A stretch of 63,668 nt of DNA, the filler included, from Pelomyxa schiedti (lineage: Eukaryota > Protista > Evosea): assembly GCA_020536535.1 (NCBI GenBank). It is 7 parts of 7 records of this genome, joined end to end, with 100 filler letters (N's around TTAATTAATTAA, not from the genome) between each part and the next. Parts side by side here need not be neighbours in the genome. Positions count along the whole stretch, not along the records: positions 11,256 to 34,088 come from JAHLWZ010001064.1; 6 more parts are not named here. One strand, written 5' to 3'. Below the pieces are notes generated by a model that saw nothing but the letters and a program-made list of their open reading frames with translations, was not told the origin of the DNA and did not search any database. This document shows positions 11,815-18,546 of the stretch, piece after piece. The position numbers were made by a program, and so were the translations under genes. Each line of letters begins with the position of its first letter. The stretch's first letter is position 1.

Positions 11815-14712
11815 ACATGGGCATGAAAGGGAAATGTGTCCCCTTGTGGGTGGAACTATCAAAACAGCACAGGAGCGTGATTAATCGGGTGTTTGTTCTG
11901 GCTGGAAAGTCACGGTTACAAACAACAGTGTAGTACAACAATAGGGGGAAGTAAAACGGGGCAGCAACAACAACAGTACTCTGCCTCAGTCTTCAGCAAC
12001 AGATTTTTCCAGTCTCCGTTTTTTCGTTTTAAAACGATCAGAAAAGGCTGTAGGTGTCGGTGTGGGTGTCGGCACCCACGTATGTGTAGGCGTCGAGCGG
12101 CGGTGTTGGGAACAACAGCAGCAACAGACAAGCGAAGGGGTGAAGGTTTACCCAACAGCGCCGGCGCCCACGCCATCAGCTGTGCCACTGAGGCCTACAA
12201 CGTTGGGTGGCACAATCAAAAAATATGCCTTGGGAGATTGCTTGGTGAGTGGTGTTTTGAATGAGGCATTCCAAGTTTGACTGGGGTGGTGTTGCTGTAG
12301 GTGAAGTGGAATGCAAAGGTTGTTGGAATTGATGTTTGGGTTTGATGATGGGTATTTCCTTTTGGAGCATTTTCAAATTGAGTTGTGAAGCCATTGGCAT
12401 CCAACAAATTGCAACTCTCCCCCGCACCGGACGTAGACAACAGCACGTTGGACATCCTGGACACCGAGCATCGACTGTTGAACAAACGAGCTGCTCCTCC
12501 CACCCCGACGCCTGCTCCCATAATCCCTGCCGAGCCGCCACCAGCACCCACGCCCCCACGACGGCGACGTTGTTGCCGTGGCTGCCGTCGTAGGCATTTG
12601 GTGCTGTCGCTGTCGCTACAAAAAAAATTCCTGTTCAAGTCCAATCAGCAAGGAGAGTGGGTGGCTTCTCTCCAAAGGAACTACCAGAGCGGAACATTCT
12701 GAGAGACAACCAGTCCATTTATCTTGGGAACTTCCCAAGTTGCCGAAAAAAATTGGGATCTTGGTTGTATAAGGACAGAGTGGAGATGAAAAACAACGCA
12801 CCGTGCGGAAGGACGGGGCTGATGCCAGAGCCCAGCAGAAGCAATCACGCTTGGTAGCGGTTCGAGGTCGACTGTACATTGGCAGGGGGGACATGGTGCC
12901 GGTGCCGGAGTGCGTGGGTTTCAGCAGCCACCAACCTGACTGATCAGCCGGTGTCGTCCACATCTGATTAGCCGGCGGCCTCGGGTGCGGGGACGCCCGC
13001 GAGCCCCCTACACCTTCTCAGTCTCACGCCTGGCGCGTGGGGCGTTGAGGGAGGCGGGGGCGGCACGGCAGGCCCGCGTGGGTCTGGGGTGCTGGGGTCG
13101 TGGTAGGGGCGTGTGGGCGCGGGGGCGTGCGGGGGGAGGGGCGGCCCGTTGGGGGACTGGCGCTGCTGACGCGGCGCTACACCCCCTCGGGGCTGCGCCG
13201 CCCCCTCCCTCCTCCTCGTCCTGCTCCCTCTCTGCTCCGACTCTGGCTCCTCTCTCCTCTCGTTCTTGTCGTGGCTCGACCGCTTTTCTAAGTGCTCGGT
13301 GCGGATGCCCCACAGGATGTCTCAAAGTTGTGTAATAATCGGGAGCTGTCCTGGTTTCCCCGCGCACCCCAACAAGCCCGTGCGATTCCCTCCCCTTTTC
13401 TGCCCTCCGCCCTCCTTTGGCCCAGCAGCATGCAAGCTGTTTGAAGCGTCCTCGCCGTCATCTCCCTGGGGGCGTCGGCCTCAGTGTCGGACTCTGTCGT
13501 GTCTGGGGCACTCGGGGAAGTTGGGCCCCTCGCCTCGTTGTTTGCTGTCTCTTGCTCCCCTCAGCCGGGCCTTGCGGCCCGGAGGTTGGGCTGCTTGGGG
13601 CACGCGGCTCGTGGCTTGGGGGCCCTCCGCCCTGGCTTCCCCTTCACCCACAGCCCGTTCTCGCCCTCGCGCTTTTTCACAGGAGTGGAGATGCTGCGCA
13701 TCATCCTCACTTCTAATCAAAAATCAAAACAGAAAAATCCTTCTCTTCCTGTGGTGATCGTTGGTTTGAACAAAAAGCAGTTGTTACAGAGGGGTCAGAT
13801 CTCAGCACAGCCATCCTGGCAGACGAGATTATGGGAAGTCTCATCTTTGGCATTTGTTGACATAAAAAGTGTCACATGCCAAAGCGGTGTGCCAAATATC
13901 TTGTCATTCTTAAATTCAACTCCAAGGGATCTTGTTGCAAATGCTTCTTCGTAGCAGATGCGGGCACCGGTGTACGAAGGCCTGCGACCACCACTGTGCT
14001 TTGTGTAGGGAGTTTTCACGGCAATTTGGTGGTGACAGCGAGCAAAGTCAGAGGGATGATGGTAGTAAAACCTGTTTTTTGTTTTCTGATGAGGGTAACA
14101 GGTTTGAATATGCACACTCCATGGGCTCTCAAGAAGGATGGCTCCGCAGCTGTATTATCAGTTTCCATAAAGAAAGATGATGGGGTTTTGGATTGTGGGT
14201 GTTTTGAAGATTGCAACAGGGCTCAAGTTCGCTTGGAGTGGGCCCACGACGACGTAAATGAGTATCGCATCTGCTTGAAAGTAAAGACCCCAGAGGAAGA
14301 CACCCCCGTCAACGTTGCGGTGATGACCTCCCCATTTTTGCCTTTTCCTCAATGTTCACAAGGTTACTACCAACCTCATCACAAAATCGGGCAGTGCCGT
14401 CAAGGTTCAGCACAGCCGCCTCACTTGCAACCCGTTTGGGTGGAAGGGAATCTTTCACGTCACAAGCCTCCCCAGTTTCCCCGCAGTTATCACCTTCCGC
14501 GTTGAACAGGAGGACTAGAACCCACCACCGTCTTCATCTGCATTTTGGGAATGGAAAAGATTTGTGCCTTTTTTGAACAACCAAAAATTCCACTGGGGAG
14601 AGGAAACGAATCGGTTTTAAATCGTTGGGAATCCCTATACGTACACTGTATAGGAAAGAACAAAGAACAAAAAAAAAAAAAAGAAAGCTACATAGTCCAC
14701 CAACAGAGACAA

Positions 14713-16382
14713 ATGAGTTACCGCAGAAAGAGAGGTGGTGTGGTTAGTGATAGTGATGGAGAGGATGAGAGGCCAAAGCTGCCAGATACAGATAGCAGGA
14801 GAAAGATCCGGAAGATATCACTGGAACGACTGCAAAAAGGAATGTCTGTGAAGGAGGTGAGAGGAAAAGTTGGGAAGAAGCAGGCAGATACCGTTCTCAA
14901 GCACAGTCCGCATCTAGTTGTGCACCCCAAATAATTCCCGCAACTGTGAGTGTAGTTCCGGCAGAGGGCGATGAGAACGGGCAGTGCGTGTACTACGGGG
15001 CAGTGATGTTGTTCAAGAATGTTCTGAAGTTCGCTATGAAACTCGCGATGGCGACCGGTAAGATTCTCTCGTACTTTTCTTGGCTTACGGCCGCAGGTAA
15101 TCTGTACTCGTACGGCCTGCCCTTTGTTGCTGCGGTTGTTTATGCTGACGGCCGCCGTCTTATTGCCAGTGACCACAACCTTACAATGGGTGTTAGTATA
15201 AGAAGCATAAAGGGGAAAGAGTCACTATATGACTTCCACACGATCGCGATGTACGATCTCTATGGGAAGGAGCAGTACGGGCACTTTAAGGTAATGGAGT
15301 CCCAGTGCGTGTGGTATGATGGCATAGTCTGGGCTTCACAGCAATCGGTTCACGTTCCAGGTTGTGCAGAACCTCTCCCCCTCAAGGTGTTCATAGTAGG
15401 CGATTGGGCCACTCTTTTGTCGCTCGTAAACAACGCACATGCTCCAGGGTACCCAGGCCCGGAAAGGATATGTATCAAGTGCCAATTCTCTGGAATAGAC
15501 ATGCTTGGCCGTTGGAGGCGCCGGCCTTGGCAGAATTGGCCCTCAGACCTGACCTGGGATCACGAGGATAAGGCCTTTGGGGTTCAGCCTTCGACTACCC
15601 ACTACGATATCCAACACGCCGCTGTGGCCATCCTAGTGAACCACTGCCAATATCTGAGCAATCCCATATTCACACTTCCAATCCGGACAGATAAAATGAC
15701 AGAAAAGTACATCAGCTGGACGGAGAGGTTCGAGGAAATCTACTGTAGCTACGCAAGTGGTGGAACAGGTGGAGGCAGACAAACATTCTGGGCATGCGAT
15801 CTGCCGAGGTTCTTCAGTGCGGGAGTGGCCGAGATAATGAACACCTTCAGTCATCCATACTACAAGGAGATTGGGATGATGCAAATGGCTTTTCAGATGA
15901 AAAATGGGAGGAAGATGAAGATGTCCTTCAAGGAGGCAGTGAGGAGGATTTTTGAGGCAGACGAGTTCACATACAACTGGCGATGTAAATCCAAAGTTAC
16001 CGAGAGGGATATCAGGCTGCATACTATGCACCGCGACCGGCTCATTGCGATAATGAACCACTTTGAGTGGCACATGCCGCAAGTCTTGCACTATTGGCAG
16101 AACCACATAGTTGAAGAGGGACTTGCTTGCTCACCGAAGCTCACAAGGCAAGACCAAGGCGAATCGTCTCACCAGATCAGCAACAGAGTCGTCAAGGGCG
16201 TGAAGAAAGACATCGCGGACGGGGAGGCAACGCAACCAGAGTGGGCTGAAACCCAGCCTCTGAGGCAATATCAGATAAGCGTTGTGAGGGCCTCCCCTCT
16301 TTGGGACTCCTCTTTGGACTGGGGTGAGGGGGAGTGCGACGACGCCGAGGAAGCCGAGGAAGACGAGCACGAACAGGACTAA
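14713..16382 (+). CDS. RAG1-core/Transib/Chapaev-type DDE transposase (~539 aa, one predicted intron 14857-14906)
   Basis: VYADG (D, 15147), FIVGDW (D, 15402), CIKC (15471/15480), DIQH (15615), WR (15978), LHYWQNH (16089/16104), QGESSHQ (E, 16161), acidic tail. A 50-nt GT..cacAG intron joins the basic exon 14713-14856 in frame. Confidence 0.8.
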
Positions 16383-16767: not shown

Positions 16768-18546
16768 TTAGAACCCTATTTTGAAGTACTTGAGAGGGTC
16801 GGTGATACGGCCTTCGATGGCTGATGCAGCGAGAGTGGCGGGAGAGCACAGGAAAATCTGGCCAGTGGGTGATCCCATTCGACCCTTGAAGTTCCGGTTG
16901 GCTGTGGACAGGCACCTCTCTCCAGGGGCAAGGCATCCCTATGGGATTTCTTAGTTAGGAGTCGAGGGAGGTTTTGGGAAGCGTGGGTACTTGATGTGCG
17001 CCGAGGCAGGGACCGCATCCAGTGGGTAGCAATATTCCGCCGGCTTCGATTAGAGTTGTCAGGGTGCCGTCAGCCATGGCCTTGAGCATCTCAGTGCGGC
17101 TGGCAGCTCCAATAACGAGTCGGCTTGTTGGAGCAACATGGTGACCACGCAAAATGTCGGCGGCCATACGAAGGTCGGAGTACCTGAAATAAAAAAAAAG
17201 GGGGGGGAGTTGAGTCAATGTATCTCCTTTGTGAGGTTAAATTACCTTCCATTGGTGCAAGTGCCAAGGAAGAATTGGTCAATTGGGGTACCCTCAAGTG
17301 CGGTCGCAGGTACAACATTGTCCACTTCATGGGGTTTAGCAACAACTGGAACAAGTGCCCCCATGTCAATAACTACCTCCTGTTATTGGTGAGAAAAGTG
17401 AAAAATGGGAGGAAAAAAGGGTAAACCTTGGAGTAAACAGCATCAGGATCAGACCACTCAAAGTTAATGGTGGAGATATCAACTCCAGCGTTTTTAAGGT
17501 AGGCGAGGCAGATGTCGTCACAGGGGAAAACAGCGGCTGCGTAATTATTAGAGAAAGTCTTAGGCGAAGTCTACCTTTGGCATCCATCTCAACACCCATA
17601 TTGCAAATTGTTATTCTTTGATCCATTGTGAGGTTCTAGAGGTCACGTGAATAAAATGATGTTGGATCTGATATGTTACCTGAATGTCACCATGGAATTC
17701 CATACAAGAGTACGCGGCACCAGACACACTTATTGTCTTGGCAATTGTGAGGACTAAGTCTTTGGCAGTTACACCAGGGCGAAGAGCTCCAGTGAGAACT
17801 ATTTTGATTGAGGGTGGTACACGGAGCCACAACTCTCCTGTGAGAAGAAGAGATGCTGCCTCGGTGCGGTCAACACCTGAGAGTACGCTTTGAGGTGATG
17901 ACCACATCACATATCAACCACACCTGTAGCAAAGCACCCAACAGCGCCGTAAGTGCATGTATGTGAATCACTTCCAACAACAATTCCCATCGGAGGGGCA
18001 AGTCCATGCTCAACGACAACCTTTCATGTATGAGGTTGAGCCTTCATTAGCATTTAAATGTGTCTCACCTGATGGCAGACACCAGCACCAGCGTCAAAGA
18101 AATGTTTAACTCCAAACTTTCTGACAAAATTACGGACATCTTGGTGTCCCTTGGCAATTTTTTCATCCTGTTAGTAATTTAGTCTTATTCATACTCTAGT
18201 TTATTTTAATCTTATAAAATAAAACTCACTGAGGCAGGGATAACATGATCAAGAACAATAATGGGCAGTTCGGGGTTAACAAGACCGAACTCGTCAAGCT
18301 CTTTGGAAATCTGTGCATATCAACCACACCAGAATGTCAAAAACGGGGGGAAAAAAAAAGAGAACAAAATGCCGTTAGAATTGCGTCACAGAGAACTGAG
18401 AAACACACCTTCCCAATAATAGCGGAAGTGTTATCGTGAGTAAGAAGATGGTCGGGGGACAAAGTTACGATCTGGCCCACTTCCAACGTCGCTGTCGCAT
18501 TTCCTGCCTTGCGTGCAAGTACTTTCTGAGCAAACGATCTCCCCAT
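16768..18546 (-). CDS. leuC: 3-isopropylmalate dehydratase/homoaconitase large subunit (prokaryote-type LeuC/HacA), ~9 introns
   Basis: [76 protein letters not shown]; the protein ends without a swivel (LeuD) domain. Confidence 0.9.

Follow-up and report, generated by a model that had tools for sequence, protein, structure and literature searches.

The window analysed here is a stretch of 63,668 nucleotides, of which positions 11256-34088 correspond to contig C1064 (22,833 bp; JAHLWZ010001064.1) of the Pelomyxa schiedti assembly. This anaerobic amoeba belongs to the Amoebozoa, in agreement with the amoebozoan-type host named in an earlier note on this DNA. The gene of interest, Pelo_15944, is annotated by NCBI as a hypothetical protein of 526 amino acids (KAH3742655.1). 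Its main open reading frame, as called by us, lies on the plus strand at 14946-16382 and encodes 478 amino acids. This stretch represents the predicted catalytic core, with putative equivalents of the pre-RNase H, RNase H, ZnC2 and ZnH2 elements of the RAG1 fold, and ends in an acidic C-terminal tail (16320-16379, plus strand) which is specific to Pelo_15944 and modeled with low confidence. The surrounding ORFs on the contig are ordinary. An upstream 209-residue ORF (13876-14505) was considered as a partner gene and rejected, being unrelated to the ORF2 found in the mobile elements described below and having weak paralogs elsewhere.

The 5' part of the gene can be modeled in two ways. An ATG at 14713 opens a first exon on the plus strand that covers 14713-14856 in the model of the earlier note and runs to 14905 in the NCBI model. 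This exon is rich in basic and acidic residues, carries the motif RRKRGG and contains a segment (ISLERLQKGMS) that aligns to the N-terminal KLQxNLS block of the family. Since the ATG at 14713 and the main ORF are in different frames, an intron is required between them. Two plus-strand candidates of 50 nt each compete, namely 14857-14906 (GTGAGA..CAG), proposed in the earlier note, and 14906-14955 (GTCCGC..TAG), used by NCBI. The former retains the residues SASSCAPQI, which align to the HSxWAxI block of the family, while the latter deletes this segment, and the family alignment weakly favors 14857-14906. Of the earlier proposal, the start codon and the basic exon are thus present, whereas the intron is plausible but unproven and differs from the NCBI annotation. 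The NCBI model includes a further in-frame intron of 39 nt (15058-15096, plus strand, GTAAGA..CAG), which is backed by homology because it removes a 13-residue insertion found in no relative. In one single-cell RNA run, two short contigs fall within the ORF, one of which skips positions 15180-15225. The GT..AG boundaries and the TACTAAC box of this 46-nt intron lie on the minus strand, and the contig is therefore antisense. It is the only spliced RNA observed at the locus in this run, and none of the run's contigs spans 14857-14906, 14906-14955 or 15058-15096.

The RAG1-core motif series reported in the earlier note, including its spacing and the acidic tail, was verified for every residue by script. 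The first catalytic aspartate D68 (YADG) is encoded at 15147-15149 and the second, D153 (VGDW), at 15402-15404, the latter within a conserved DW pair. They are followed by C176-x-x-C179 (ICIKC; 15471-15482), representing the ZnC2-type half of a predicted zinc site, D221-x-x-H224 (DIQH; 15606-15617), a [C/D](2)H-type motif within the YDPLH block of the family, and the W345-R346 pair. H382-x4-H387 (HYWQNH; 16089-16106) would supply the other, ZnH2-type half, and E406 (QGE; 16161-16163) the third catalytic residue, all on the plus strand. The distance between D153 and E406 is 253 residues. At the sequence level, a CxxC after the second aspartate and an HxxxxH before the glutamate match the C2H2 arrangement of RAG1 and Transib. 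The order D153, C176xxC179, H382xxxxH387 and E406 also agrees exactly with the motif order in Kojima's definition of the CMCT clade (2025; PMC12730594).

To assess conservation, we used an alignment of 14 family sequences (A3), some of which are gene fragments. The D68-G-R and D153-W motifs, H387 and E406 are present in every member covering these positions, with C176 and C179 invariant in 14/14 sequences and E406 kept in all six members that reach it. H224 is missing in one gene fragment and H382 in one degenerate fragment but both are otherwise kept, while position 345 is either W or F. Overall identity within the family is only 18-25%. Conservation of the key residues at this level of divergence exceeds chance by far, so the motif series is genuine and subject to constraint. 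This bears directly on whether the ORF of Pelo_15944 might be a non-functional leftover, still open by chance at a locus transcribed only in antisense. The antisense orientation of the sole spliced RNA contig fits such an explanation, as does the presence of other family copies in the genome that are fragments with stop codons. However, 478 intact codons and nine intact key residues at 18-25% paralog identity would be unlikely without selection, and we regard a chance leftover as improbable. Pelo_15944 itself departs from the family consensus in several blocks, reading HYWQNH in place of HYWLEH and having lost the C-terminal GR..SD..NTWEC block. This drift could reflect relaxed constraint.

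Sequence-based searches did not connect the protein to any named family. Its exons were examined separately, by reference, in these searches. With a Pfam library lacking the newer RAG1 models PF26100, PF26101 and PF26104, hmmscan at E<=10 returned nothing relevant for the ORF, for exon 1 or for any family member, and at the same threshold the DUF1280, DUF1258, Transposase_21 and Plavaka models had no match on the family proteins. HMMER searches against all PDB sequences (phmmer and a family profile) recovered no RAG1 or Transib, nor did two sub-profiles, one for the D153-H224 block and one for the ZnH2-to-E block. Searching the P. schiedti genome with the Pfam models for RAG1 (PF12940), DUF1280 and Transposase_21 gave nothing; control genomes were likewise blank, so that this outcome means no more than the lack of a detectable match. 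A word-indexed homolog search with Pelo_15944 returned only its own record or P0006, a single further entry. The family is undetectable by sequence profiles for named families. The lack of any Pfam match is consistent with a distinct deep branch of the clan, as the earlier note had suggested.

Relatives were nevertheless found. Exhaustive phmmer comparison with 1.8 billion representative proteins yielded seven other relatives, one full-length and six fragments. The full-length relative, P0002, has 492 residues and is 25% identical to Pelo_15944 (E 1.6e-15); its host is not close to Pelomyxa, given that a neighboring gene is merely 33% identical. A few of the relatives come from other uncultured eukaryotes. 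Within P. schiedti, a profile search of the genome identified four intact ORFs, namely Pelo_15944 on C1064 and paralogs on C1768 (599 residues), C791 (488 residues) and C276 (467 residues), together with about ten fragmentary loci, some interrupted by stop codons. Judged by their sequences, the four intact paralogs are deeply diverged. As to the genome-wide copy number raised as a check in the earlier note, the DNA of Pelo_15944 is single-copy.

An AlphaFold (AF2) model of Pelo_15944 was built with the 14-sequence alignment A3. The model reached a pTM of 0.72 with pLDDT values of 80-97 across residues 110-400, compared with a pLDDT of 32 when Pelo_15944 was used alone as a single sequence. In the model, strand 61-68 ends at D68 and strand 144-152 lies just before D153, as expected for an RNase H arrangement, while E406 is found at the edge of the confident region. 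Foldseek comparison with the PDB placed RAG1, the amphioxus protein BbRAG1L and HzTransib at all of ranks 1-47 (best E 2.7e-7, probability 1.0), with the next families, Hermes and P element, at E > 0.02. Foldseek TM-scores were only 0.37-0.49 with an rmsd of around 10 A. A second fold search, independent of Foldseek and covering 48,161 chains, aligned 332 residues of the model to mouse RAG1 (4wwx_E, Z 15.4), superimposing model residues 31-411 on RAG1 534-967. BbRAG1L (Z 13.8), HzTransib (11.8), P element (10.7) and Hermes (6.6) scored lower. The end of the structural alignment agrees with a correspondence of E406 to RAG1 E962. Taken at the level of predicted structure, a RAG1/Transib-type fold is supported for the protein, and the assignment to the RAG clan made in the earlier note holds as far as the fold is concerned.

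Like RAG1, BbRAG1L (ProtoRAG) and HzTransib, Pelo_15944 would combine pre-RNase H, RNase H, ZnC2 and ZnH2 elements. It shares with them the order D, D, CxxC, DxxH, W, HxxxxH, E and a distance of about 253 residues between the second aspartate and the glutamate, so that the DDE triad, the RAG1 order and spacing and, in the model, the RNase H fold are all found in one protein. Language-model features, which are independent of AlphaFold, also placed RAG1 clusters (0.93) among the nearest named neighbors of the ORF. For P0002, only 25% identical, RAG1 was the top-ranked feature hit (0.95, 178/256 features).

Do these similarities make the family a true early branch of the Transib/RAG1L lineage, similar to Subgroup I Transib and with RAG1-like D-to-E spacing? 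The ranking of solved structures (RAG1, then BbRAG1L, then HzTransib), the 253 residues from D153 to E406 and the first-ranked RAG1 hit of P0002 all speak for this placement. In contrast to these, PF12940 and HMMER comparisons with the RAG1 and Transib sequences of the PDB were blank. Pfam analysis of the N-terminus recognized neither a RING domain nor an NBD, the N-terminal 35 residues being modeled with low confidence, and Pfam detected no RAG2-like or Kelch partner in the neighboring ORFs. Pelo_15944 thus differs from RAG1 and Transib in having no similarity detectable by HMMER or Pfam and no recognized accessory parts of this kind. The mobile relatives described below further differ in their ends, which carry no heptamer/nonamer-type TIR and no 5-bp target site duplication (TSD). 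Overall, we consider membership in the Transib/RAG1L lineage itself rather unlikely.

A second placement takes the family to be a divergent member of the CMC group (Chapaev/Mirage/EnSpm/Plavaka-like). No structure of a Chapaev, Mirage or EnSpm transposase is, to our knowledge, available in the PDB, and the RAG1 likeness seen there might stem solely from this gap. Among Pfam families, DUF1280 corresponds to Chapaev, DUF1258 to Mirage and Transposase_21 to CACTA/EnSpm (Majorek et al. 2014; PMC3985635). Among the predicted shapes of the ESM Atlas, the DUF1280 (Chapaev) cluster reached TM 0.53/0.76 compared with 0.48/0.51 for RAG1 fragments, and the Transposase_21 (TM 0.59) and Plavaka (TM 0.50/0.60) clusters likewise scored at least as high as RAG1. 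With TM values of about 0.50-0.61 to the DUF1280, Transposase_21 and Plavaka clusters, the model is CMC-like in fold; clusters from Mucoromycota and Rotifera scored in a similar range (TM 0.56-0.61). DUF1280 and Plavaka clusters also turned up in the feature searches, although RAG1 clusters ranked above DUF1280 in both. CMC elements and this family have C(2)C and H(3-4)H motifs in common, as well as 5'-CA..TG-3' termini (PMC12730594). That the mobile relatives carry such ends, and neither a CACNGTG heptamer nor a 5-bp TSD, speaks for this placement. Against it, the Pfam CMC models remained blank on protein and genome at E<=10 and the mobile relatives lack the 2-4-bp TSDs made by CMC elements. 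A CMC affiliation in this narrow sense therefore appears doubtful to us, if somewhat more credible than one within Transib/RAG1L.

Because predicted structures of Chapaev/Mirage/EnSpm and Plavaka transposases match the model as well as RAG1 does, Pelo_15944 is not assignable to RAG1/Transib over Chapaev/CMC. On the strength of the model, it is best described as a member of the wider CMCT clade and not of RAG1/Transib specifically. As defined by Kojima (2025), this clade includes 5'-CA..TG-3' termini and a 2-5-bp TSD (PMC12730594). The same study describes ESTA and Lanisha, which are likewise divergent and recognized mainly through remote or structural similarity to RAG1 or EnSpm. Both are set apart from our family by their description, ESTA being fungal with TA TSDs and Lanisha originating from moss.

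DNA searches showed that the paralogs on C276 and C791 sit within multi-copy elements with sharp recurrent ends. The C791 element spans 4,095 bp (90181-94275 of that contig) and encodes the transposase and an upstream ORF2 of 289 residues on the same strand, for which the C276 element has a weakly similar counterpart (E 5e-7). Its terminal inverted repeats (TIRs) start CATAACTGGATCA, with the first 17-18 nt identical, while those of the C276 type are about 30 bp long and start CATATCTGGATCA. In case of P0002, a 3,745-bp segment with TIRs starting (T)CACATCTGGCTCC is 99.8% identical on two metagenome contigs with different flanks. The accessory ORFs carried there were considered as counterparts of ORF2 but are unrelated to that of the Pelomyxa elements. 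The mobile relatives terminate in CATATCTGG, CATAACTGG or CACATCTGG, and a terminal core CAYAWCTGG is common to the C276, C791 and P0002 elements, with TIRs of 18-30 bp in Pelomyxa. A count of this terminal pattern across the P. schiedti genome gave 105 occurrences, versus 0 for a reversed control. Several inverted pairs of termini lie 0.09-2 kb apart and represent internally deleted derivatives. Two such derivatives of 1,318 bp (C831:7075-8392 and C848:8368-9685) are 100% identical while their flanks are unrelated, which indicates very recent movement. Among the family are autonomous cut-and-paste elements with very recent movement.

Direct repeats of 1-5 bp were found at the flanks of 0/10 insertions (eight two-ended Pelomyxa copies, the 100% identical pair among them, and two P0002-element sites); an empty site was searched for one insertion and none was found. 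The mobile relatives thus apparently integrate without a TSD, unlike Transib (5 bp) or CMC elements (2-4 bp). Their ends, CAYAWCTGG and not CACNGTG, also set them apart from RAG1/Transib, where CAC(A/T)(A/G)TG heptamer TIRs and 5-bp TSDs are expected; neither feature is seen in the mobile relatives or at Pelo_15944. Relative to the CMCT clade, all three mobile relatives carry 5'-CA..TG-3' termini, whereas the 2-5-bp TSD is lacking at the 10 insertions; Pelo_15944 has no ends to compare. A precedent for a eukaryotic DDE cut-and-paste element without TSD is provided by Spy of the PHIS group (Han et al. 2014, as cited in PMC12730594), which belongs to an unrelated, PIF/Harbinger-IS5-like superfamily.

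Taken together, we consider it likely that Pelo_15944 encodes a DDE recombinase/transposase of RAG1/Transib-Chapaev architecture, belonging to an unnamed, rare lineage with mobile members, and that the copy in the window is itself immobilized. In this architecture, an RNase H fold would carry D68, D153 and E406 and would be interrupted by a zinc module formed by CxxC (C176/C179) and HxxxxH (H382/H387), together with the DxxH motif (H224). By analogy with RAG1 and Transib, such an enzyme would bind DNA ends as a dimer, and metal-dependent nicking at the CA end would be followed by transesterification. In the mobile relatives, integration would presumably be blunt, with a 0-bp stagger.

The locus itself lacks the features of a mobile copy. 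A TIR search around Pelo_15944 gave only chance-level repeats and no convincing inverted repeats, and the terminal core CAYAWCTGG is absent from the whole of contig C1064. Only chance-level repeats were likewise found around the C1768 paralog. Further, Pelo_15944 seems to have acquired spliceosomal introns. Being single-copy, without ends, apparently intron-bearing and located among ordinary genes, it has most likely been immobilized, as a relic kept open or as a domesticated copy, with all catalytic residues and zinc ligands retained. Whether the second of these possibilities applies, so that Pelo_15944 is a domesticated host gene serving programmed DNA cleavage or DNA binding only and not a transposon relic, can be judged from several of the observations above. 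The single-copy, TIR-less state, the intact 478-residue frame with all catalytic residues, the probable spliceosomal introns (one of them homology-backed) and the ordinary ORFs around the gene are what a host gene would be expected to show. Opposed to these are the drift of several family-conserved blocks and the antisense orientation of the only spliced RNA observed. We therefore hold domestication to be a tentative reading, one with a real but smaller share of the probability than its alternatives combined. A more far-reaching proposal would combine a superfamily-level branch of RAG1/Transib-Chapaev, defined by CAYAWCTGG ends, lacking TSDs and still active, with a domesticated and catalytically competent Pelo_15944 that carries out programmed DNA cleavage for its host, in parallel to the domestication of RAG1. 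This proposal has little probability in our estimation. An immobilized copy from a lineage with mobile members remains our preferred reading.

The occurrence of such a gene outside animals, emphasized in the earlier note, is borne out by the protist host but is not novel as such, since Tao et al. (2022; PMC9435367) have described RAG1L/Transib sequences from fungi, plants and bacteria as well as from a pelagophyte alga. The supplement of that study does not mention Amoebozoa, and our literature search found no report on Pelomyxa transposons. Because non-animal RAG1L/Transib is already published, its direct bearing on how V(D)J recombination arose, also claimed earlier, is modest. What is new is an amoebozoan/protist lineage that is invisible to sequence profiles, has its own terminal motif, apparently lacks a TSD, bears signs of recent activity and has given rise to an intron-bearing single-copy derivative.

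In conclusion, the clade from which the V(D)J recombinase arose gains a deep, sequence-invisible branch with members in Amoebozoa and in at least one further protist. Lineages of this kind escape transposon surveys based on Pfam and HMMER but are recovered when structures are predicted from a small alignment. Should an empty site confirm that the mobile relatives leave no TSD, this would be unusual for the clade and imply a different strand-transfer geometry. Pelo_15944, as a single-copy, TIR-less and intron-bearing gene, may represent an independent case of transposase domestication, and the lineage as a whole can help in rooting and dating the divergence of RAG1/Transib from Chapaev/EnSpm.

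Two intact paralogs of the transposase-like gene (14946-16382, + strand) are each carried by an autonomous-looking transposon in the Pelomyxa schiedti genome, one at C791:90181-94275 (L035) and one on contig C276 from position 15918 (L020:2919 onward), the right end of the latter copy meeting a gap of Ns. In these two transposon families, the terminal inverted repeats (TIRs) start with CATAACTGGATCA and CATATCTGGATCA. Termini of this type were found 105 times in the genome and many internally deleted derivatives are present. A second open reading frame, ORF2, encoding ca. 285 residues, lies upstream of the transposase and on the same strand (L007:3320-4189 and L008:3358-4212, both − strand). 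ORF2 is weakly conserved across both element families (E 5e-7) and yielded no match in a Pfam search. The more distant full-length relative P0002 is likewise carried by an element, 3,745 bp long with TIRs beginning TCACATCTGGCTCC, which was found at two different sites in eukaryote metagenome contigs of ca. 40% GC (L003:2018-5762 and L004:3294-7031), without a target-site duplication at either.

Directly upstream of the gene in the window, and on the same strand, lies a 209-residue ORF (13876-14505, + strand). Considered as a possible partner gene, it proved unrelated to ORF2 of the mobile elements. No match was obtained for it in a Pfam search and it is absent from the public protein collection. 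Its paralogs elsewhere in the Pelomyxa schiedti genome (contigs C495 and C1129) are only weak. Further upstream, the region 12256-13755 has a GC content of 60-65% vs ca. 50% elsewhere, and long ORFs overlap there in several frames. On the other side, ORF pieces with TGCGPCLG and GTCTNGR-type motifs (16955-17910, − strand) belong to a putative intron-interrupted gene convergent with the transposase-like gene. These motifs presumably resemble those of the isopropylmalate isomerase large subunit or another aconitase-family enzyme.

Only two RNA contigs, both from one single-cell RNA run, map to the transposase-like gene (15151-15347 and 15717-15890). In one of them, positions 15180-15225 are spliced out; the GT..AG boundaries and a TACTAAC box of this intron lie on the minus strand and therefore indicate antisense transcription across the ORF. 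Such RNA could represent read-through from the convergent downstream gene.

One further TIR pair of 87 bp (C3792:453-619, L034) is flanked on both sides by sequences that are perfect reverse complements of one another. The symmetry of these flanks probably reflects whole-genome amplification, being a chimeric or palindromic artefact in the single-cell assembly. A deletion derivative of 1,318 bp sits at each of two different loci (C831:7075-8392, L030, and C848:8368-9685, L031), and both copies lack target-site duplications, possibly as a result of blunt integration. The two copies are 100% identical, which is evidence of very recent transposition.
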